A DNA stretch of 64,000 nt from Styela clava. Taxonomy: Eukaryota. Positions within the stretch are counted from its first letter, which is position 1, and every line of letters begins with the position of its first letter. The stretch lies in the NCBI RefSeq assembly GCF_964204865.1, contig NC_135259.1:6572001-6636000 (forward strand). Reading direction: 5' to 3'. The position numbers were made by a program, and so were the translations under genes. Below, one piece after another: positions 1 to 23,325 of this stretch. The notes under the pieces were generated by a model. It did not search any database, was not told the DNA's origin, and was given only the letters and a program-made list of their open reading frames with translations.

Positions 1-3000
1 CCTATATTAATTCTTCCACCATTCAATCCTTTCATTGCAATGTTGAATCCAAATCCTTCAGGTCCGATCCTGTTTTCTTCTGGTATTATACAGTCATCAA
101 ATGTAATTACACAGGTAGGTTGATTGTTCCAGCCAAGCTATGCATAAGAGGAACAGATAATATGATTAATGCATGCTCTAAAATTGTTCCATGTTGCTCT
201 TAGTTGCCACTCTGCCTACTTGCAGCTACACAGATATAAAATTAGCTACTCATCTCAAGAAAATCTATATACTGACTAACCAACTGTTCATAGGCCAATA
301 AATGTTGAGGGACCATCCTCTTGCATTTTAATGAAACATTCACTTATACATAGTATTGTAGTTGTACATTTTAAGAGGTAGCAAATAATGTGAGCTGCCT
401 TTTTACACCACTCCTCGCAATATTGTAGTCAAAGCTATCAAATTCGAGCAGCCTTGTCATATATTTAAATTAAAATTACCAACCTTTTTTTCAGGTTTTG
501 CAAATGAGAATCCTGGTGTTTCTTTTTCAACAATAAAACAAGATATTCCTTTTGGTCCCTTATCAGCAGTTCTGCACATTACTAGATAGAGATCGGTAGC
601 ACCTGCACCACTGATAAAAGCCTAAAAGATAAAAGTAATTTGTATTGTAACTTGTAAGTAAACATTACGTTAATTGACATAAACATAACATGCAGCTGAT
701 ATATTATACAAAAATTTGTATTCCCTCAATCACGCTTTGAAAAGTTACTGCTCTTCAATAGAAATCTTCTGTCTTGATTGATGATGAAAAGCAGTGCACG
801 TATTTACTTTAAGACAACATATAGTATTTTTATTTATTATTTAAATTATTGCATTAATACACAATCAATGAAAATAATTTCATAGAAAGGAGGTGGTAAA
901 AAGATAATCCAATAAGGAAATAATGAGTAAAATCACTATTATTTAATTTGTTTCTATACCAGGATTTCCGTAACAGGGTTTGGACAAGCAAGCATAAAGC
1001 ATATTGGTTCAAAAGCATAGTTATCTTTTCAGTCCCACTAGCTTACACTGGTATGAATAGCTTCTTAGGATGTAGTCAGACAAAATGGGACAACCTTATT
1101 TGAATGGTAGAAGCAAGAACTTACTTTGGATCCAGATACCCTGTAATGATCTCCATCCTTTTTAGCCACTGTGATGAGAGCAGCTGCATCACTACCAGAT
1201 CCTGAAAAATAGGCCAGAATATTTTACCATTTTTTTACTCAAGAATTTCTATCAGATAATTTATAATTTGTATATATCAAAAACAGGAACAAATGTTGAC
1301 AACTAATGCTGTTTGAATCCATTTTACAATTTTGAGAAGACAATTAAACAATTCTTTACTTCTTGGGTACATGTGCTGTGTCCCATTAGAACTGGCCCCG
1401 AAAAAAGTTTGACTATTTTGCCATAAATACCACTTTTATTCTTCTTACAAAACCTACTAAATTAATTATTCACATTGATTGTGATTTGTGATCAACAAAA
1501 AACATCTCTTTTTATTTTAGCCATCTTACCTGGTTCAGTAAGACAATATGATGAGAGAATTTTCATGGAAGTTAGAGGTGGAATAAACTTTTCTCGTTGT
1601 TCTTTATTACCAAATGTGTCAATCATCCAAGTTACCATGCTGAGAATAAATAAAAACAAATTGTCATTCACACATTATATCTTTTAGAAAAAACAAAAGT
1701 GACCAGTGAAAACATGGAACTAAATCGAGGAAATAGTATCTTTTGTAATAAGATACATATCACAGTATCAGGACATCAAATCTTTTATTTTTATACTATA
1801 GGAGCTGAATGGAAGCGAGATATTTCACTTGAGCTCAGCTAGTGTTGCAGTGTTATTTAGCAGGAAGTATAAATCATGATTTGTTTCTGTATTAATCAAA
1901 TGTTGAAGAAAAAAATAGGACTGCTTTTTCTTCTAAGAATTGCAGTTTTTATTTTGAATCAAATTTAATGTTTAGTCAGCTTGATTACAATTTCAAAGCA
2001 TTGAGCAAAATTCATATTAAAAAGATATTCATCTAATTTACAGATGTCCAAAAAATGAGTTTGTACAGCATTTGAAATTTGCCATATAAAGTTATTCGTT
2101 TACTGCAACTATTTATTCACTTAATAAAAATAAGAATCATTTGAAAACCAGATTTTACAAAATCATGCAAAATTTGTCATCCAAATTAAAATCAACTTGA
2201 CTCATATAAAGACTAACTTATGAATAGTGATATAAGCAGTTGTTGAGACACATCCTGATGATAGTGCTTCAAAAATCACAGATGTATCTAATCGTGATAA
2301 ACCTAATCCACCATATTCCGTGCTTGTATATAAACCACCGAATCCCAGTTCAGCAGTACGTTTGATCACATCAACAGGAAAATGATTCTAAAGTAGATCA
2401 ACATGAATAAAAATCAAAGTCACAAATAAAGTACAAAAAATTGACTTTACTTCAAACTTTTCTATAACCAAGACTCATAATATTGGTATGTTGGAGAAGA
2501 CCAATCATCAGGAATATTAAAATATGTCATATATTGGATTCGAACCAGCTAATAGTCAAGTTTTTAGTGTTATTTGAAATAGCAATTATAACTTTAAAAG
2601 TATCTGATGCCTAATTCTTATGTCCCTGCGACACACAGCATACATGTGTAATTTTTTTAATGGCATTTTACAAATCACAAAGACACTATTATTTAATATT
2701 GTTAAAAAAAACTATCTAGAATACCCTTAAATAAAATATTCCAGTTTCCTTTTTCTATTTTTAAATCGCGTATCAGGACAAGATTATTACAGTATTATCA
2801 TAATAAAAATTTTGTGAAACCTCTTCATCCCACTTTTGCATATTAGGCGCTAATTCATTTTGGGCAAAGTCATAGGCGAGTTTTTGGTATTCCTTCTGTT
2901 CATCACTGAGCCCAATCGTAGCTGGAAATGCAAAAAAAATAAATTAAGAATTGATGGATCAACCAAAAGTGAGACAAACAACAATTTGAAAGTGACATGC

Positions 3001-3365
3001 CCCAGAGTCCTGAAGTCACAATACTATGGTATGAGAACGGTAGAATATTGACAGGGGTTAGTAAGTGTAAGTCAGTAAGTGTTTATTCCGATTTTCCGTT
3101 ACAACACAACAATACATGGCAAAACAAACAAATATAGGAAAATCAGGACAGTGGTGTCCGAAGATTATATTATTCTGATAGTTGGAATGAGTGATATCTA
3201 CTCGTGTATCGGTATTCTACTGTCAGACTGTGGACATAACTCACGGTCAATGCAAGATGTTGTGTAGTTTGCTGCAGAACATAACTTGATTTGCTTCAAA
3301 CTAGCTTCTTTCAGTGCGATCGCTCTATGAGCCACACGCAGCGAAGTACTGATCAAAGACAACAT
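1..3365 (-). CDS. ACAD8: Isobutyryl-CoA dehydrogenase, mitochondrial; 5' seven coding exons, gene continues past the left edge
   Basis: Minus-strand exons with GT-AG borders and consistent phases: 3245-3365, 2821-2921, 2218-2387, 1530-1639, 1125-1201, 484-621, <1-137. Translation [81 protein letters not shown]...[38 protein letters not shown]...[16 protein letters not shown]...GSKAFISGAG...GPKGISCF...LGWNNQPT...[11 protein letters not shown] matches ACAD8 motifs. The N-terminus resembles a mitochondrial transit peptide. Confidence 0.95.
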
Positions 3366-3399
3366 TATATAAATTCTGGAATTCTAAACGATCAACGAA

Positions 3400-3770
3400 G
3401 ACACGTGTACACGTTACATGCCTTTCAGCGCTATCGTACCCCAGACCTATCTGCCTGCTGTAGACTGTCAGAGGGATTTGTGTGGAGCAACGCACGATGC
3501 CGTATTTTAATCATATATTTTGATACATTTTGACAATTTACGTGAATAATTTTTTCACGAAGTTGACCCGTAAATATATGGTTGACCTATAGACACGGCT
3601 GCTGTAACGTCCTTATTTCTGAGAAATGCCCTCATATTGACATGTGTCCTTATTTTGGTTTTATTGCAGGAGGTTCATATACCGGGCACTTAGATTGGTC
3701 AATTCGAATGATTGATTTGCTAGAAAGATACCTCATCGATTGCTACACGCATTCATGACGCACTGACGTA
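3400..3770 (-). promoter_or_regulatory. Probable ACAD8 proximal promoter
   Basis: Directly upstream of the ATG at 3365: CACGTG E-box (~3402), CCAAT on the minus strand (ATTGG 3694-3698), CRE-like TGACG half-sites (3756, 3764). Motif inspection only. Confidence 0.35.
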
Positions 3771-3801
3771 ATAACAGCAAATTAATTGCAATAGCCTACC
3801 C

Positions 3802-4462
3802 TAGTGCTCTTCAACAGGGGTTCCACGGAACCTTAGGGTTCCGCAACACATGCAGTGGGGTTCCATGAGTTTATAGGGTTCCTTGGGGGTTCCGCGTAAA
3901 GGAAAAAATGACTGCGGGCCAGTAAAGTTGAAAAAATGATTATTCTTCTTTTCCATTTTTGGATGAATTTCTAAGTGCGCAACAGCAAGAAGGACTCCAA
4001 GATATCCGTGATGATATTAATTCTGAGGAAACCTTCGAAAAAAATGGGAAGGCATATTTTTGGATTTCTCTTCACAAAGAGGGTACAGCAATTGCAAAAA
4101 TGCATTAAAAATTCTGTGTCAATTTTCCAATACCTATTTGTGTGAATCAGCATTTTCTGCTTTAACAACTATTAATACCAATAAAAGAAGTTGTTTAAAG
4201 AGTGTAGACAAGAGTATGAAAAATGCTTTGAGCGCCGTGGAGCCACGATTCAAGAAGAATGCAAAGAAAATGCAAGAACAACCTAGTCATTGAATTTCAC
4301 GCTTGTTACCTTCTTTCTGTTTCGTTGATGAGGTGGAAATATTTGAATCACAAATATTCCGTGTTACGAGTATTTCGTGTTTTATTTTTGTTATTTGGGG
4401 TTCCATAAAACACGAAAAATGATATCAGGGGTTCGCAATAACAAAAAGGTTGAAGAGCACTG
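3802..4462 (+). mobile_element. Non-autonomous hAT (Buster/Charlie-type) element with transposase C-terminal remnant
   Basis: TIRs TAGTGCTCTTCAAC / GTTGAAGAGCACTG, GGGGTTCC subterminal repeats, degenerate 8-bp TSD gcctaccc/gtctagcc. ORF 4060-4293 (ALKILCQFSNTYLCESAFSAL...EPRF...QPSH) is the typical Buster/Charlie hATC terminus. Confidence 0.88.
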
Positions 4463-5993
4463 GTCTAGCCTACCGGTAAAGATTAGTTCGTGTAACCTAC
4501 CTATCGATATCGCTGGAACAAACTATAGGAGAAGAACCATTCCAGTACAAAGTAAGATTAGACATTGGTCACCCGGCATGAATACATTTTGTTTATTACA
4601 TTGCGTTCTTTTTTATCTTATTATTACGTTTACCTAATTTCCTTATTTTTGGGTTAATATAGATGGCAACAGAGACAGTAAAATCTATGATAGAGAGAGA
4701 GAGTTAGATATTTATTTCCACAAACAATGAAAAACAGCCTTTGCCCGACAACAGGGGTGGTATCTTTTTTGTGGCTTCGGAACCAGGCCACACAAAAGGG
4801 GCCAGGCCACGGACAAATTGGGGCCAGGCCTCAGAATACTTGGGGCCAGGCCAACGCAATGGTAATGTTAGGACATCCGTATTTGTTTAGTTATATTTTT
4901 GTTTATAAGTAATGTGGAAACTGGTAATGTTAAGACATGTACGGTACCTGTACAATTGAACCGTACCGTATGTTACAACCAATGACGTTACAACTCGGGA
5001 AAATGCTGTATTCGAACACTTACTCATTACAAATGTAGAGGTATAAGTTTATTTCGACTCCATAATCAGCAATAGACGATAAAATAAAAGTAACTGATTA
5101 TAGAATCGGGAAAGCAAACAAAACCTCAGGTAAAGTTTGAAGCGTACATATTTTAGATGGAAAGGTATTGATAAAAGTAGTACGTGTTCGCTCACCCAAT
5201 GTATTACTTATGTGAGGGGGTTACATTATTGTAGTGTTTCTACTGGTCATCATATCCAGATATTTATATTCCTCACCGCATTCATTGTCTGTTTACTGTA
5301 GCGTGAACTGGTGCCTATATGTTAAAAAAAACCTCAGTGAAATAAGTTATTACTTATCGATTTTAATCGGTAAGTATGTTGATGGGTATTTGTCTATCTG
5401 TCTGTTAGATGCACACGATATCTCACGATTGAATCTACTCCAGGTTTTGCACGTGCATTCATCATATGTCGTACCAGAAGCCTATCGATTTTTGAAGAAT
5501 TATGTCGTATAATTAGCGAGTTATTAATTAATTAGTGATGGGACACAAGGTGTCACTATGGAGTAAGAGCGCTGTTTTGGGGGATCCCCTAACTTTCGAT
5601 CGATAAGTCTTCGGTCTCTAACCGATGTTCTCGTATTTATTGCTTGTTGCATACCTTTTTGTAATTGTTAATTTGTTTAGCGAATATGTGTTGTTATATA
5701 ATTAATTTCAAATAACTGAAAAGTAACCATTTATACAATAAATGGTTAATATATCAAAGAATAATTCCACCAGTGACTCAAATGCTATTATTAAATGAAG
5801 TCCGTACTGATAAATTGTGTAGTTCTATCTGTATTGCATAGGCAATTGACAGGGGTTTACACACTAAGATGTTTTAGATTTGTAATACAAATTGCAGGCA
5901 CAACATATCGGTAGCTGATATATTCTATTACAACCACTGGTATCCCAATATTCAGCATACAAAAAAAACTACTCTTCTCCCGGTTATACATTA

Positions 5994-10239: not shown

Positions 10240-13200
10240 ATGAACGAAGCAGATGAATCAATTACACAAGATTTGAATAGACGAGAAGCTTCTTCTTCGC
10301 CTGCAGTTCCTCTCGCGGAAACAGACGGCGGTAACTCTGAAACTATTGGACGCAATGTATTATGCCACGAAAGAGTCCGACTACAAAATGAACTAAATGG
10401 TTTGTGCGACAGAATTTCAAAATCGATTACTGAAAATGCTCAAAATTCTATCGTTACTGATCTTAAAATTAAACTTCATGTTAAACGATTTGCTTATGAC
10501 CAAGTGATGGATAAACTCATTCCGACTACCCGTAATCCAAATGTTTTGAAGAAATATGAAACTGGAAGGCAAATGATGTTATCGAAAATCGATCAAATTG
10601 AAAGCAGAATTAATTCTTACCTTGACGAGGAGATCGTTTCTGATCACGGGTCTGTCGAATCCAATACAAGCAAATGCAGTGTTGAATCACTGAAGCGATT
10701 GCAACTTGAGCAAGAACGAGAGGTAGAAAGAGCCGATTCTCTTGTACGTATGGCTAAACGAGACTTTCTCACAGAAGAAGATACCATTCGCAATAAAATA
10801 TCAGCACTAGAGCGTCGCCTTGATACCAAACGTCGAGACATAAACGAAAAAGAACGAATGGCAGATCTAACACGTCGCCAAGCTGACGAACTTATGCGTG
10901 AAATTGAACAAGAAAAGACTGAATTGGCTACCAAAAAGATGCCTAAAGATAACTTCCGTGGCGTCAATATTGAATATCCGTTAGAGTCAACACGCAGACG
11001 AAGTGCAGCGAACTTTTTTGTTCCGACGAAGAGTCGAGTGGCAACAAATTCAGAAAAGACCAAAGAATTGCATTTCCCGACAGCACGAACTTACAAACGC
11101 CCGTCTCCTGCAAACAGAATGCTCATACCACAAGAAGCAGTCGACGCGTGGATTGACCACTTGGAACCTAACCAGTCTGGTAAATTTTCTGTTAATTCTT
11201 TTAATATGTCAGTAGAGGAACAAACTATGTTATCATTACAGTTGAATTCTAGAATATTGTCCCAGCACCATTTATCGCCGATTACGATTCCTAGTTTTAG
11301 CGGAACGCCCCTAGAATGGCCAAACTTTATTGAGTTATTTTTTGATAATGTACACAGTTCTCTTGACGACGACGGTTCGCGTATGGTTCGCTTAGTCGCG
11401 TCTTTGACGGGGGTGGCTAAACGACATGTCGATGGCTTAGGCACGGTGGGAAGTAATTATATTGTCGCGTTGAGTGAATTGAAACATATATTCGGCCAAC
11501 GGGTGACGATTGCTCGGGCCTTTCTCGAGAAGGTTGTAGATGGTAGACGAGTAACAGAATTCAGTATCCGAAAAATATCCGATTTTCATTCTGAAGTTCG
11601 CGACATTGTGATAAATTTGAAGAAAATGCGATTGCTTGCAGATTTGTATAGTATTGAAAATGTTAGAAAGACAGCAATGCGAATTCCGGCAGAACTGACC
11701 TCGAGTTGGAATAAGTTTGTGACTGATATGATTCGTGCCGACGAAATGCCGAGTTTACTGGACTTCGAGCAGTGGTTGTGGGAACGATGCGAGGAATTAG
11801 GAAATCCTTTTTCACCAAATCTTTTCAGTACTAAAATAGATCGTGACGATCGCAGACAGGCATTTCCTAAGAAGAATGTGGTATACCCTTTATCGGGTCA
11901 TTCAAATCAGCCGCTCGAACAACCGCGAATGCAATGTTTCTATTGCAATGGTTTTCATTCTTTAAGTAACTGCGATAGCTTCAGGTTTAGTGCCAATGAC
12001 ACGAAAAGAAGATTTCTACTAAATTCACGCCTGTGCTTTAACTGTCTCGAACCTGGACATTTAGCTATTTCGTGCCGGTTCCGCAATATGTGTCGTGTTT
12101 GTCCCGGTAAGCATCATTCAGCCATCCATGGTTTGAGAGTCGTTCCTAATAGATTGAGTGATAACAATCAGCCTGATCTCCCTCCTCATATGAGCGGCGT
12201 TGCCAATTCTCATGTTTCAGGCGTTAATGGTGTTCAGTTTCAGCTTTTGCCAGTCGTAGTAAAAGGCCCATTGGGATCCTCTGAATATGCTATCGCTGTT
12301 CTAGATTCTGCCAGTCAAATCTCAATAATACATCCCAAATTAAAACAAAAACTTGGTTTGAAAGGAAGTCCTAGGTGTCTAACCATTAACACCTTATGCA
12401 ATAAGGGCGTTTCGCAAAATACGGAGGTGGTGAAATTGTCGGTGCGATCTGCTCACGACGAGAGTGGTCAAATTCTGATGTTAAGCAACGTGTTTGTGGT
12501 CGAGTCACGCATACCACATCCAGCTAGAATCCTTAAGAACGATCACAATATGACTCACCTGCAGGATATTCCGTTAACCGACATTGAAGCGAATAAAGCC
12601 ATGATTTTAATCGGAGCCGATAATCCCTTGGCGCATTTCCAGCTTGAACGTAGAGTCGGCCAGCAACATGAACCAGTGGGTATTAAAACTCCTCTCGGTT
12701 GGACTTTGATCGGGTCTTCAGGCCCGACTAATGAAGATGAAACTGTTTCAAATATGCTGTGTTGTGATTTGCGTGACCAGTATAACATGCTGCAAGAACA
12801 AGTTGAGCGATTTTGGTCCACTGAAGCTGTAGGCACGGCGTACAATTTGACCCGTAGCGAGTCGATTGAAGATAGACAAACTGATAATTTGATGGAAAGA
12901 AAAATTAGATTTATCGACGGTCATTACGAGGTTGGGTTTATGTGGAGAAATGAAAATTGCGAAATGCCGCCAAACGAACACGTAGCGCTTAACAGGTTCG
13001 AAAATCTCAGAAAACGACTCCAAGGAAACGAACGTTTGCGAAACTTATATTGTAAAGAAATGGCAAAGAATATTGAAAGGGGTTGGGTGCGTAAGCTAAC
13101 TTCAGATGAAAAGGCGTTTCGCGGTCCTCGAACTTGGTTTCTGCCTCATCATGGCGTTGAAAATCCCAACAAGCCAAATAAACTAAGAATTGTTTTTGAC

Positions 13201-16179
13201 GCGGCATCTACTTGCTGCGGCGTCAGTCTGAACAGTCGATTGATGTCCGGGCGCGATTTGATCAATAATCTAGTCGGGGTGCTTTTACGTTTTCGGGAAA
13301 GACCAATCGCTATAAGCGCCGATATAGAAGCCATGTTTCATATGATTCGATTGCCGGAAGATGATACGGATTCTGCACGTTTTCTCTGGTCGGAAGACCT
13401 TTTTTCAACCAAACGGCCAGATGTGTATAAATTCTTAGTTCGTATTTTTGGAGCTGTGGATTCACCTTATGTCGCAAACTTTTGTTTGAAGAGAGCTGCG
13501 TACGATAGTAGAAACAAGTTTCCTAGAGACGTAATATTAACTACCGATAGAGACTTTTATGTCGATGATTTACTTACTTCGAAATGGAATGTTGATTCCG
13601 CGGTATCGACAGCTAAAGATATGATTAAGATGTTACACGATAAAGGATTCAACTTGACCAAGTGGGTTTCGAATTCTAAATCGGTTTTACGTGAAATATC
13701 CAGTGGACGTGTCGTCACTAATGTTGACTTAGATCTGGACAGATTACCTGTTAGAAAAGCTCTGGGCTTGCATTGGGACATCGAGAAGGATTGCTTTATA
13801 TTCGACCACCAGAAATTTACTGAATTTACCACGAAAAGAAAGGCCCTTAGTGTAACCAGTTCAATATTCGATCCATTAGGATTTGTAGCACCAATCATTT
13901 TGTATGCCAAATTATTACTGCGGGAATGTTGGCGTGACAACTTAGCTTGGGACGAAGTATTTGATAATAAGAGATTGAAGTGTTGGGAAAATTGGATAAA
14001 TTCGCTGAAATGTTTAAAGAGTTTTTCGATTCCACGTCAATTTAAAGGTGTTAAATGTGAAAGTTCCTCGTATGAAATTCATATATTCTGTGATGCATCA
14101 GAAGTGGCATATGGTGCGGTAGCATACATAATATCGAAGCATTCCCGGGAGAATTTTCAGTGTAGTCTTATCGCGGCTAAAGCAAGAGTCGCACCTATGA
14201 AAGGTATGACCGTGCCTCGTTTAGAATTGCAAGGTGCTCTCTTGGCCGTGCGATTGTTAAATTTTCTCCGAAAAGAACTATCCCTTCCACTAGGCGACGT
14301 ACATATGTGGTCCGACTCGACTTGTGTATTGAGATATTTAAAAAATAAAACTCGAAGATTTAAAACATTTGTAGCCAATCGCGTTCGCGAAATACTCGAT
14401 CACACTCGGTCACACCAATGGAAGTACGTCGACTCAGCACAGAATCCCGCTGATTACTGCACTAGGGGAATGACGGTTTCCAAATTTCTAGAAAATTCTG
14501 ATCGATGGCTACATGGACCAGAGTTTTTGCTCATGCCTGAAAGTGATTGGCCAAGCCAGATAGCGTTACGTGCAGTTGACGACCACGACCAAGAGATTAA
14601 ATATCAAACATGCATACTAGCAGATTGTTTTATAACTACGGATAACAGCGATGGAGTACTTGATTCGGAAATCGAAAAGGTCGTCGATGTCGAACGTTTT
14701 GATTCGTGGTTTTCCTTATGCAAACGAACTGCCGTGGTTTTGTTGGCAGCTCGTTATTTTAAGAATCTTTCTGTGAAATGTCCGACGTATAGCCCGCTGC
14801 CAGCTCAACTTGTGACTCCTAAACAGTTGGAACTCGCGGGCCGGTATTGGATAGTTTCTGCTCAAAACAAGCATTTCCGCGTGGAGCGCAAATGCATAAC
14901 TAACGGAGAAGATTTATCATCAAAATCAACGTTACTTAATCTGACGCCATTTTTCGATGGACAAGTGATCCGCGTCGGGGGCCGTCTTGAAAATGCCAAT
15001 ATCCCACTGCGTTCGAAACATCCTATTATACTGCCGTATTCAAGTTTGAAATGTGATTCGAACTGCCCATGTCGAATTTCATGGTTGATAATGAAAGCTG
15101 CTCATATTCGACTCGCACATGCCGGTCCAGAGGCCACGCTTAGCGCATTAAGACAGCGCTACTGGCATATAAAAGGGAGAAAACTTGTCAAACGAATAAT
15201 TGATAATTGTTGGGAATGTAAAAGACGTCGAGCAAGTTGCAGAACCCCACTGATGTCGAATCTGCCCAAAGTTCGTGTTACTGAAGCAAGACCGTTCGAA
15301 AATGTCGGGCTGGATTTCTTCGGCCCGATCCAAACAAAGAGAGGCAGGGTCTTAGAGAAACGATGGGGGTGTTTGTTTTGTTGTCTTTCAATGAGAGCTG
15401 TACACATTGAGATGGCATGGACTATGGATACTGATTCCTTCATATGTGTACTTTTGTCTTTCATTGCGATACGAGGACCTGTATCCCAAATATGGTCGGA
15501 CAACGGATCAAATATAGTTGGTGGTTCCCGAGAGCTGAAAACCGTCCTTAACTCGATAGATGAATCTCGCGTGGCAGAACTGTGCTTAAAACACAATATT
15601 GAATGGCATTTCACTCCACCTTACGCTCCCCATTTTGGTGGCGTTTGGGAAAGATTAGTAAAGTCCGCAAAGCGTGCTTTGAAAGCAGTTCTGGGGAATG
15701 TGCGTGTAACCGACGAAGTCTTGAAGACCGCGTTTGCGAGGGTTACCGACATCATGAATAGTAGACCCATTACAACAGTGAGCGACGAACCAACCGACTT
15801 TAGTGCCATTACACCAAATTGTTTGTTGAAAGGGCATTCGGCCGAAGTGTTTCCACTGGATTCAGACGTGATGAAATTATGCTACAGAAAACGATGGAGG
15901 CAAACCGAAGCTATTTGTAATCAGTTTTGGAGAAGATGGCGAAAAGATTACCTACCGAATTTGATGACACGATGTAAGTGGCGGAAGGAACAACAAAACT
16001 TACAAGAAGGAAATCTGGTGCTCGTTTCTGACCCCGTTGCACCGAGAGGACGTTGGCAACTTGGTCGTGTTATTCAAATTTACCCTGGTTCTGACGGACG
16101 AGTCCGAACTGTCGCGGTTAAAACTATAAATGGCATACATATTCGACCCGCATCGAAAATCTGCCTCCTAGAAGAATGA
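10240..16179 (+). CDS. BEL/Pao gag-pol polyprotein (1979 aa)
   Basis: Coiled-coil N-terminus; gag (IPSFSGTPLEWPNF); three Cys/His knuckles (CFYCNGFHSLSNC, CFNCLEPGHLAISC, CRVCPGKHHSAIH); aspartic protease LDSAS; RT with KLRIVFDA, ADIEAMF and YVDD; RNase H HIFCDASEVAYG; integrase H-H-CxxC, DFFGP, SDNG, PHFGGVWE. The order PR-RT-RH-IN and these motifs fit BEL/Pao. Confidence 0.97.
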   Translation: MNEADESITQDLNRREASSSPAVPLAETDGGNSETIGRNVLCHERVRLQNELNGLCDRISKSITENAQNSIVTDLKIKLHVKRFAYDQVMDKLIPTTRNPNVLKKYETGRQMMLSKIDQIESRINSYLDEEIVSDHGSVESNTSKCSVESLKRLQLEQEREVERADSLVRMAKRDFLTEEDTIRNKISALERRLDTKRRDINEKERMADLTRRQADELMREIEQEKTELATKKMPKDNFRGVNIEYPLESTRRRSAANFFVPTKSRVATNSEKTKELHFPTARTYKRPSPANRMLIPQEAVDAWIDHLEPNQSGKFSVNSFNMSVEEQTMLSLQLNSRILSQHHLSPITIPSFSGTPLEWPNFIELFFDNVHSSLDDDGSRMVRLVASLTGVAKRHVDGLGTVGSNYIVALSELKHIFGQRVTIARAFLEKVVDGRRVTEFSIRKISDFHSEVRDIVINLKKMRLLADLYSIENVRKTAMRIPAELTSSWNKFVTDMIRADEMPSLLDFEQWLWERCEELGNPFSPNLFSTKIDRDDRRQAFPKKNVVYPLSGHSNQPLEQPRMQCFYCNGFHSLSNCDSFRFSANDTKRRFLLNSRLCFNCLEPGHLAISCRFRNMCRVCPGKHHSAIHGLRVVPNRLSDNNQPDLPPHMSGVANSHVSGVNGVQFQLLPVVVKGPLGSSEYAIAVLDSASQISIIHPKLKQKLGLKGSPRCLTINTLCNKGVSQNTEVVKLSVRSAHDESGQILMLSNVFVVESRIPHPARILKNDHNMTHLQDIPLTDIEANKAMILIGADNPLAHFQLERRVGQQHEPVGIKTPLGWTLIGSSGPTNEDETVSNMLCCDLRDQYNMLQEQVERFWSTEAVGTAYNLTRSESIEDRQTDNLMERKIRFIDGHYEVGFMWRNENCEMPPNEHVALNRFENLRKRLQGNERLRNLYCKEMAKNIERGWVRKLTSDEKAFRGPRTWFLPHHGVENPNKPNKLRIVFDAASTCCGVSLNSRLMSGRDLINNLVGVLLRFRERPIAISADIEAMFHMIRLPEDDTDSARFLWSEDLFSTKRPDVYKFLVRIFGAVDSPYVANFCLKRAAYDSRNKFPRDVILTTDRDFYVDDLLTSKWNVDSAVSTAKDMIKMLHDKGFNLTKWVSNSKSVLREISSGRVVTNVDLDLDRLPVRKALGLHWDIEKDCFIFDHQKFTEFTTKRKALSVTSSIFDPLGFVAPIILYAKLLLRECWRDNLAWDEVFDNKRLKCWENWINSLKCLKSFSIPRQFKGVKCESSSYEIHIFCDASEVAYGAVAYIISKHSRENFQCSLIAAKARVAPMKGMTVPRLELQGALLAVRLLNFLRKELSLPLGDVHMWSDSTCVLRYLKNKTRRFKTFVANRVREILDHTRSHQWKYVDSAQNPADYCTRGMTVSKFLENSDRWLHGPEFLLMPESDWPSQIALRAVDDHDQEIKYQTCILADCFITTDNSDGVLDSEIEKVVDVERFDSWFSLCKRTAVVLLAARYFKNLSVKCPTYSPLPAQLVTPKQLELAGRYWIVSAQNKHFRVERKCITNGEDLSSKSTLLNLTPFFDGQVIRVGGRLENANIPLRSKHPIILPYSSLKCDSNCPCRISWLIMKAAHIRLAHAGPEATLSALRQRYWHIKGRKLVKRIIDNCWECKRRRASCRTPLMSNLPKVRVTEARPFENVGLDFFGPIQTKRGRVLEKRWGCLFCCLSMRAVHIEMAWTMDTDSFICVLLSFIAIRGPVSQIWSDNGSNIVGGSRELKTVLNSIDESRVAELCLKHNIEWHFTPPYAPHFGGVWERLVKSAKRALKAVLGNVRVTDEVLKTAFARVTDIMNSRPITTVSDEPTDFSAITPNCLLKGHSAEVFPLDSDVMKLCYRKRWRQTEAICNQFWRRWRKDYLPNLMTRCKWRKEQQNLQEGNLVLVSDPVAPRGRWQLGRVIQIYPGSDGRVRTVAVKTINGIHIRPASKICLLEE

Positions 16180-21260: not shown

Positions 21261-21620
21261 GTGAGTGAGTATTGGTAAGGTGCGACCTATAACATGTCGT
21301 GATAATACCGTACCTACATATTGTGTACCATTATCTGATCACGATGATTGCCCATAATTTCCATCTCTAATACCCAAATATATCGGCCCGACGGGACAAC
21401 AAGATTTGCCCCAAATAACAGATTTTACTGAACGATCCATATGCATAATTTGTGACTAACAATCACAAATATATTGAATAATATCATGAACTGTGTAAAA
21501 TATGTATGTACAATGTAGGAAAAATATATTTGGGTTTCGTGCAAGTTCATAATATGTTGATTTTTTTTATTTATAAATATATGAAACGCTTCAATATATT
21601 TTTATTAGGTAGTTGTCGAG

Positions 21621-22883
21621 ATGGGAACGAAAACTTTTCTTCTGATTGCATTGTTGTCAGTCCTAGTTTTCAACGAATCTGAAGCATGGAGATTTGGGAG
21701 AATATTTAGAAGTATCAAGAGGACTGTGTCACCAATGTTGAGGGGCAATGGAATGCAAAATGGCCCAAACGAGTGTGGTGGAGGTGGAGGCGAAGAATAT
21801 CAGCAACGCTCCTATAACAGAGGGTATAATATGTTGAAACCTCAAACTCATTTAATTGAAGGTTGATGATATCACGACTATATAATAGGGTCAATTTTGT
21901 ACTAAAATCGGTAACTGTGACGTAGAACCAATCCAAACATGAAATGTAAAGACAGCTGAGACCCAACTTTTCAAAGGATCTATTACTGAGAAAAACAGTC
22001 GAACAAACTGTACAATTTTCATGGATTTGATGAAAAATCAAATGCAATTTTATCAAAACATAAATCGACCAAAAAAAAGTAAAGCATAAAATGTCATTTG
22101 TTCTTGTAAGGCGACAAAGGTTACACTTTACACAAATGTATTTAAAATTCATATATATTCTTTCTGCAACATTACAGCCGTCGTCGACGTCGTGCATACC
22201 AGGGCAGAAGACGACGTAGAAGAAGATCCAGAGGAGACAATGAAATTAGCGAACAGGCAAGAAATCTTTTCACGCAAATTAAGTATATAAAACTAGATTA
22301 AACATTTGATATGATTGGCTTGAGTAGAAGAAAATGAATAAATATTGAAAGCCTTGTAACGAAACAAAAAATTCACGTTCCTAGTGAAATTTATTCATCG
22401 AATTTTTCATACTCATTATATTCAATGAGAGTTGTGTACGTGACCGTTCCTTCACTCCTCGTAAATTTTTCAGAAAGTTTCAGCCTTGACATGTTTCAAA
22501 TTTTTTTGCATGTTAACCTCACGTATTGTTTACTGTATAAATATGAATATAATATAAACTTATTCAGGAACTCGAGGACGCCAGTGATTTTATGGACATG
22601 CTTGCTGATGAGTATGGCGAAATTCAAGCCCAGAAAATGTTTACAGACTTCTTAGCACAATACAAGGCAAAAGAAGGTATGAGTTGTATATTGACTATTT
22701 TAATTGGAATAGCGTAAGCTGTGTTCTTGCATCACAACTGCTGCCTTAGCACTATATTTTATACTATGAATAACTAGCCTTGCAAAAGTGACACATATTT
22801 TCTGCTTATTTACAGAAGATGTTGATGATCCTGCGAAACATCTATTTGATGACGATAAGGAAGACATCGCTAGCTTTGAATAA
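21621..22883 (+). CDS. Secreted cationic (antimicrobial-like) peptide precursor, 152 aa, styelin/Ci-MAM-like architecture
   Basis: join(21621-21823, 22178-22256, 22568-22676, 22816-22883), phases 2/0/1, second intron GC-AG (CAG|GCAAG). Protein: MGTKTFLLIALLSVLVFNESEA-WRFGRIFRSIKRTVSPMLRGNGMQNGPNECGGGGGEEYQQRSYNRGRRRRRAYQGRRRRRRRSRG-DNEISEQELEDASDFMDMLADEYGEIQAQKMFTDFLAQYKAKEEDVDDPAKHLFDDDKEDIASFE*. AATAAA at ~22974. Confidence 0.85.
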
Positions 22884-23325
22884 TCTAATCTAGATTCTCC
22901 AAGATGTTTGACTGTCGGACCGAACATGACATCATGAAATTATATTTTTACTTTGTTGTTTTTATGGGCATAAAATAAAACGGATGCTAATTATGGCAAT
23001 TTGATGTGTGTTGATCTGATACAGACTACATTTGTTTTCATTCTTAGTATTTAGCGCATGTTCTCGGATTTGTTTGGCATTTTTTGCTAGACATGTAATG
23101 GAAATGTCGGTACCTACCTTTTCATACAGTGCTCTTACATATATTATTTTGTGATCGGATAGATGGTTCAAATCCCAAACAATATGGACTTGAAGACGAC
23201 TTTAGATCCTGTTGGATACTTTTTTTGACAAAATTTGTAGTACTCTATCTTTGTAGACGCGTAGTTAAATCTCACTTGTTGTCGGTTGGAGAGGTCGCAT
23301 CCATTTGTCCCAGTAGTTCCTAGAT

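Follow-up and report, generated by a model that had tools for sequence, protein, structure and literature searches.

The classic antimicrobial peptides of tunicates, the styelins and clavanins, come from Styela clava. One short locus of its genome, at 21621-22883 of the 64,000-nucleotide window (the whole stretch of DNA that was analysed), raises the question of whether four small exons together form a real gene, and whether its product could be a defence-peptide precursor in which an arginine-rich cationic half is held in check by an acidic tail of opposite charge, as the original prediction proposed.

The first part of this question is settled by transcript evidence. In the six-frame list the only open reading frame shown for the gene is an 81-residue one (21621..21866), consisting of exon 1 running on into the following intron, so that the gene appears there, as had been pointed out, by its first coding exon alone. 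Logan contigs from four public runs (X1, X5, X6 and X10) were aligned to positions 21400-23100, where two contigs (X5, 593 nt; X6, 618 nt) span the locus in four blocks and the pieces from X1 and X10 are concordant. Spliced contigs originate from three studies and join exactly the four exons that had been modelled, including the unusual GC-AG junction (Table 1). The runs were merely guessed to be RNA, and it is the spliced form of the contigs that identifies them as such. Read depth in X1 was about 1,400-5,800 over the exons vs about 5-7 over the introns, a difference of hundreds-fold, and across all RNA runs the stretches coding for the two arginine runs contain zero indels. LOC120337346, as the gene is named in RefSeq, is a real and strongly transcribed four-exon gene.

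Some details of the splicing pattern bear mention. The joint between exons 2 and 3 was given as 22253|22565 with four ambiguous letters, and moving the cut by +3 yields a GC..AG intron with CAG|GCAAGA, a typical donor of this kind. An alternative joint between the same exons, starting from the sole GT donor (at 22283) and using the acceptor at 22568, would shift the frame and run into a stop at 22655, and is contradicted by the RNA joint, which also rules out an in-frame acceptor for exon 3 at 22585. A 160-residue antisense frame (21715..22197, minus strand) is spurious, since all three introns read GT/GC..AG on the plus strand only. In the X6 contig the 13 letters 5' of 21595 (about 21582-21595) mismatch the genome and may stem from a further exon upstream, from another allele or from noise in the assembly. 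Elsewhere in the window, an uninterrupted 1979-residue frame (10240-16179, plus strand) belongs to a BEL/Pao LTR retrotransposon and encodes a Pao peptidase A17, a reverse transcriptase, the zinc finger and core of an integrase, and DUF5641.

Table 1. Features of the LOC120337346 locus, in coordinates of the window; contig labels refer to the public runs.
Feature	Position	Strand	Description	Evidence
TATA-like box TATAAATA	21573..21580	+	about 15-27 nt upstream of the contig starts; putative promoter element	
Exon 1	21595..21823	+	short 5' UTR, ATG 21621, signal, amphipathic peptide, Gly/Asn/Gln linker with Cys52, to Arg67 and 2 nt of Gly68	contigs (5' starts 21595 in X6, 21607 in X5), joint, translation
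Signal peptide	21621..21686	+	22 aa ending ESEA (Ser -3, Ala -1), putative cleavage site; kept in paralogs	AlphaFold2 helix 3-17
Cationic amphipathic N-terminal peptide, W23-V36	21687..21728	+	K33-R34 dibasic pair; Trp23 invariant	AlphaFold2 helix 26-36
Intron 1	21824..22177	+	GT-AG, phase 2; joint 21823|22178	RNA joint (X1, X5, X6, X10)
Exon 2	22178..22256	+	R5 run 22179-22193, AYQG, R7 run 22206-22226, SRG|D, NEISEQ	contigs, translation
Gly87|Asp88 junction in exon 2	Gly87 22233-35, Asp88 22236-38	+		
Intron 2	22257..22567	+	GC-AG (CAG|GCAAGA ... TTCAG), phase 0; joint 22256|22568	RNA joint (X1, X5, X6), sequence
Exon 3	22568..22676	+	part of acidic tail, predicted helical	contigs; AlphaFold2 at low confidence
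Intron 3	22677..22815	+	GT-AG, phase 1; joint 22676|22816	RNA joint (X1, X5, X6)
Exon 4	22816..22999	+	end of acidic tail, stop TAA 22881-22883, 3' UTR, AATAAA 22974-22979	contig ends (about 22999, 20 nt past AATAAA), sequence

The gene had been described as hidden, a description that does not hold for the public record. The spliced 152-residue model matches, residue for residue, the RefSeq protein XP_039261049.2 ("uncharacterized protein LOC120337346 [Styela clava]"), whose title bears out the ascidian origin that had been surmised. An earlier record of the same title, XP_039261049.1, differs in carrying the substitution R41G. Database searches were conducted exon by exon, with full-length work relying on the public record, and a profile search with exon 1 through 1.84 billion representatives led back to this public 152-residue protein. 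In the literature collection searched, the LOC and XP identifiers were not mentioned, and a 16-residue string of styelin C entered in the same kind of search gave no match. The gene is annotated in RefSeq, yet uncharacterised.

Translation of the spliced exons yields the division that had been anticipated, a 22-residue signal followed by a basic and an acidic half of 65 residues each. In the window allele the basic half carries 20 Arg and one Lys against three Glu, for a charge of +18, and the acidic half 13 Asp and ten Glu against five Lys, for -18. The mature N-terminus WRFGRIFRSIKRTV is strongly amphipathic, with an Eisenberg helical moment of 0.81-0.84 over its first 14 residues, and is followed by a linker containing a run of five Gly and a single Cys, and then by runs of five and seven Arg, all of which are present in the product as predicted. 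Charge is separated between the two halves far more sharply than expected by chance: the excursion of the cumulative charge is 18, compared with 8.1 +/- 1.95 in shuffled sequences, of which 6 in 100,000 reached it, and a kappa-like segregation ratio of 0.45 exceeds that of all 5,000 shuffles. AlphaFold2, given a four-sequence family alignment, found no fold (mean pLDDT 52.5, pTM 0.19), placing helices at residues 3-17, 26-36, 93-110 and 112-130, the last two at low confidence, and leaving residues 37-92 as coil. The product is most likely a secreted and largely disordered pre-pro-peptide. It possesses all elements of the general kind of precursor in question, namely a signal, a cationic amphipathic region and an anionic propiece of comparable and opposite charge.

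How exact the balance between the halves is depends on the allele. Relative to the window, the transcript contigs of all four runs encode I28M, L40F, R41G and N43H, arising from differences at 21704, 21740, 21741 and 21747, all four in exon 1 and all protein-changing, so that allelic changes seen in RNA (4/4) are confined to residues 28-43. One of these four runs, X10, is labelled as another organism and shows the changes at low depth. Alleles with R41G, namely the transcript allele and XP_039261049.1, carry charges of +17 and -18, and across the family the net charge of the pro-form takes values of 0, -1, -4 and -11, those of the paralogs being -4 and -11. The proposed charge balance survives as a rough neutralisation, which is exact in the window allele, and not as exactness by design: approximate neutralisation is a family trait, and the exact zero is the coincidence of one allele.

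This family occupies three loci in S. clava, termed here C13 (LOC120337346), C8 (LOC120328378/LOC120328379) and C17 (LOC120333014). The four-exon plan is common to C13 and C17, with all four exons in order at the latter, and at C8 the exons were matched one at a time, exon 2 showing a frame problem. Relatives outside S. clava were not found in profile and protein searches that included the 1.84 billion representatives; a protein search with XP_039261049.1 returned only the query itself, and one with the family alignment only S. clava proteins. Features kept in the family alignment include the signal peptide and the Ala22|Trp23 boundary with its invariant Trp, the cores of the two arginine runs (R4-R5 in the first, R4 in the second) together with their Tyr/Ser flanks, the Gly87|Asp88 junction (invariant at all three loci), the EQE with which the tail begins, an HL motif and a near-terminal Ala. 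The acidic tail, predicted to be helical, is likewise a family feature. Residues 24-60, which diverge strongly, and the G5 run are variable, the single Cys and the Gly preceding each arginine run are absent from the paralogs, and the peptides between runs differ from one paralog to the next (AYQG, SRSSYS or SSYSTS). This is the pattern sought in defence precursors, a conserved signal and propiece around a mature peptide that varies among paralogs, with the arginine runs also kept. An RGD motif spanning the junction is unconserved, the C17 paralog having SGD in its place.

The paralogs show peculiarities of their own. LOC120333014 (C17:6565028-6567290, plus strand) encodes 211 residues with a net charge of -11 and 13 His, and contains a His-rich insert of HSGEHH-type repeats and four SYSTS-RRRR units, followed by the G|D junction and an acidic tail. 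At C8 (about 11802127-11802242, on the minus strand of the local stretch) the entry frame of exon 2 hits a stop, while the conserved SKIAEQ end and a GT donor lie in another frame, with a run of nine A between; this discrepancy may reflect variation between haplotypes, an error in the homopolymer or decay of the copy. In RefSeq, LOC120328379 reads through and acquires an odd N-terminus lacking the family signal, for which the assembly has a proper exon.

A parallel with the styelins had been drawn from a shared signal/cationic/Gly/acidic layout, and here membership and resemblance must be distinguished. Membership in the Pfam family Styelin (PF17562) is defined by a 27-bit cut-off, and neither the four exon translations nor full-length XP_039261049.2 matched this family even at E<=10. 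As a positive control, exon 1 of styelin C scored 26.9 bits on 16 residues, and a genome-wide scan with PF17562 found a three-gene cluster (C10:16.31-16.34 Mb) only, leaving the C13 locus untouched. Against Pfam at large the exons gave nothing, and the full-length protein noise only (LemA at 0.11, TT_ORF1 at 8.6). The LOC120337346 product is not a member of Pfam Styelin.

Resemblance is another matter. Using hhalign, exon 1 of the C13 gene and its C8 paralog was compared with the first exons of five styelin-like genes that the genome also contains: styelin C, the C4 tandem set and two C10 genes. The probability was 96% and the E-value 5.7e-9 over 36 columns, a short region dominated by the signal. 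The score of 41.9 fell to 30.4 +/- 2.8 when the mature columns were shuffled and to 15.4 when the signal was shuffled. The mature part alone scored 12.8 vs 5.7 +/- 1.5, above all 60 column shuffles (maximum 9.8), with local pairs FGRIFRSI/FGKAFRSV and SIKRTVSP/AIKKTVTSP, the styelin-like partner given second; W23-V36 is thereby aligned to FGK.FRSV, with which the styelin C peptide starts. Most of the score derives from the signal peptide, which may be alike by composition, and this counts against the link. Even so, the alignment suggests that the signal and the first ~14 mature residues are akin to styelin-like exon 1s. In the ESM Atlas the nearest neighbour of exon 1 was the pleurocidin family (0.85, 172 shared features), to be taken as a lead only, and exon 3 gave low recognition with uninformative DUF3502 fragments; styelins have themselves been described as pleurocidin/cecropin-like (PMC10608444). 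The same genome also encodes clavanin-A-like peptides with 83-87% identity to the query clavanin A (PMC4904370). Three tandem copies of a styelin-like exon 1, spaced by 5.5 kb, lie at C4:4959047, 4964548 and 4970050 (plus strand), with a signal ending in NSDA followed by GFFGK..KAIKKTVTSP, and further single styelin-like exon 1s are found on C10 (two) and on C3 (one, very Arg-rich).

Beyond these scores, the architecture of LOC120337346 parallels that of styelins C, D and E of the same species in several respects. Both have a signal ending in Ser-Glu-Ala and a Trp/Phe-Gly-basic amphipathic start, and the MLG|DM sequence and acidic tail of styelin C in this genome correspond to SRG|DNEI and the acidic, predicted helical tail of LOC120337346, with the same Gly|Asp junction. 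The proposed parallel in layout is supported by this shared junction, its invariance at three loci and the exon 1 alignment. In contrast, the cationic part of LOC120337346 is 65 residues long, contains two Phe and no KHK motif, whereas the mature styelin peptide is a Phe-rich one of 31-32 residues bearing that motif (PMC10608444, PMC9966394). The Gly/Asn/Gln linker and two arginine runs are missing from styelins, and the gene itself has four coding exons with intron phases unlike theirs and resides on a different chromosome.

Taken together, spliced RNA, segregated charge blocks, the amphipathic start, conservation among paralogs and the styelin-like exon 1 with its G|D junction argue for LOC120337346 as a putative charge-neutralised host-defence peptide precursor distantly tied to styelins, to which we assign a probability of roughly 0.55. 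Host defence is the most likely function from what the sequence offers. Removal of the signal after ESEA would expose the invariant Trp23, and the pro-form would be kept in secretory granules, probably of haemocytes, where the 65-residue acidic helical tail would offset the +17/+18 half, a mode of storage for which alpha-defensin and styelin/botryllin precursors offer precedent. The cationic half would then be freed by a cut at the invariant Gly|Asp junction, which styelin C also uses, and be amidated, and furin-type convertases could cut further at K33-R34 and within the arginine runs. Of the amidation and cleavage sites that had been put forward, SRG|D is backed by its invariance, and NRG|RR and YQG|RR are not, their Gly being unconserved. 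The W/R/F-rich amphipathic N-terminus may serve as the membrane-active unit, and the Tyr/Ser-flanked arginine runs may additionally let the peptide bind polyanions (membranes, nucleic acids or sulfated glycans, for example). Several considerations weigh against a defence role: arginine runs are ideal convertase sites, so that a long poly-Arg peptide might not come through secretion intact; the cationic half has twice the length of a styelin and is mostly non-helical in the AlphaFold2 model; there is no significant match to any Pfam family, Styelin included; and the searches described above brought up relatives in S. clava alone.

The same segregation of charge admits a reading in which the protein does no killing itself. 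As a block polyampholyte it could self-condense, or its Arg/Tyr/Ser modules could bind sulfated glycans or DNA, and it would then serve as a granule-packing or polyanion-binding matrix protein that builds granule cores or extracellular nets. Blood cells of styelids contain heparin-like glycans, potential partners for such a role. Extreme charge segregation, predicted disorder and high transcript depth all fit, as does the presence of botryllin and granule material in extracellular traps of a related ascidian (PMC9966394). However, release of a peptide is suggested by the amphipathic N-terminus, conserved and styelin-like, and by the invariant G|D junction, and the pro-forms of the paralogs are unbalanced (-4 and -11), leaving a purely structural role rather unlikely.

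Alternatively, the arginine runs could be mere convertase sites within a precursor of several bioactive peptides, a prohormone whose products signal rather than act as antibiotics. Carboxypeptidase trimming and amidation would in that case yield a 45-residue N-terminal amide (or a 10-mer after cleavage at K33-R34), AYQ-NH2 and an acidic C-terminal peptide. Polybasic sites directly after Gly (NRG|R5 and YQG|R7) and the K33-R34 dibasic pair are what such processing calls for, and the C17 paralog, with four Tyr/Ser peptides each followed by an arginine run, has the look of a multi-copy precursor. Yet the Gly before each run and the peptides between runs are not conserved between paralogs, at odds with the pattern of a neuropeptide precursor; 5-7 Arg are far beyond the needs of cleavage, yet the first run keeps an invariant core of R4-R5; and the signal and N-terminus resemble those of defence-peptide genes. 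We consider a signalling role improbable on this account.

A more ambitious version of the defence hypothesis has the cationic half released whole, as a ~64-residue amidated peptide beginning with a (possibly brominated) Trp and combining a styelin-type helix with a poly-Arg module. Its poly-Arg units, possibly DOPA- or hydroxy-Arg-modified by analogy with styelin D, would bring the peptide into cells or anchor it on nucleic acids or extracellular nets, and the pro-form, a +/- diblock, would condense on itself and so be stored safely in granules. To our knowledge, such a two-module weapon of membrane helix and poly-Arg has not yet been described in any animal, and from the sequence at hand release in this intact form seems doubtful. 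The earlier statements on the modified residues of styelin D and the Cys-linked dimers halocidin and dicynthaurin agree with reviews; the suggestion that the present peptide dimerises through its own Cys is not supported, as the residue is missing in the paralogs. Finally, a protamine-like nuclear basic protein or a non-functional frame in a transcribed region is very improbable, for although the Ser/Tyr-flanked arginine runs are reminiscent of protamines, the protein clearly has a signal peptide, which is conserved, and its net charge is about 0, whereas proteins of the protamine kind lack a signal and are nuclear and strongly basic overall. In addition, its frame is conserved over four exons at C13 and C17, and the mRNA is abundant, properly spliced and equipped with a polyadenylation signal.

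Returning to the preferred reading of a charge-neutralised defence precursor, LOC120337346, together with two or three paralogs, would constitute an unstudied family with a styelin-like head, conserved poly-Arg modules and a matching acidic tail. If active, the peptide would represent a natural antimicrobial helix fused to an Arg tract of the cell-penetrating type and supplied with a built-in inhibitor, of interest both for peptide design and for understanding how blood cells store toxic cargo. The value of the gene lies in being a concrete and testable candidate rather than a new concept.

Among known systems outside the styelins proper, one close in kind is botryllin of Botryllus schlosseri, a styelin-like pro-peptide located in morula-cell granules that also contain furin (PMC9966394). 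Its precursor, like that of LOC120337346, comes from a styelid, is of similar size (158 residues) and is divided into a signal of 23 residues, a cationic peptide and an extended acidic propiece (PMC9966394). The three printed 12-residue botryllin epitopes showed no similarity to the LOC120337346 product. Among molluscs, the myticalins of mussels share with LOC120337346 a conserved signal, a hypervariable Arg/Tyr-rich cationic core and an amidation Gly, and have an anionic C-terminal extension of 35-75 residues, and are lineage-restricted and highly variable between individuals (PMC5577615). Unlike the present product, they are unrelated in sequence, with cores of 23-42 residues built of Pro-Arg-Tyr repeats rather than Arg homopolymers, and core and tail are split by a Lys-Arg site rather than by Gly|Asp (PMC5577615).

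Other systems share either the charge-neutralising principle or the arginine runs. The eosinophil pro-major-basic-protein is charge-neutralised by an anionic propiece, and protamines such as salmine, in which runs of 4-7 Arg are split by Ser, Tyr or Gly, bind polyanions and are antimicrobial in vitro. The latter, unlike LOC120337346, are nuclear and sperm-specific and have neither signal peptide nor acidic tail. In alpha-defensins, according to PMC3308943 (citing Michaelson 1992 and Valore 1996), an anionic propiece of similar size and opposite charge keeps the cationic granule peptide inactive until processing; this propiece is N-terminal, the mature domain is disulfide-folded, and there is no sequence relation to LOC120337346. 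The charge-neutralised precursor is an old principle, seen in styelins, myticalins and alpha-defensins.
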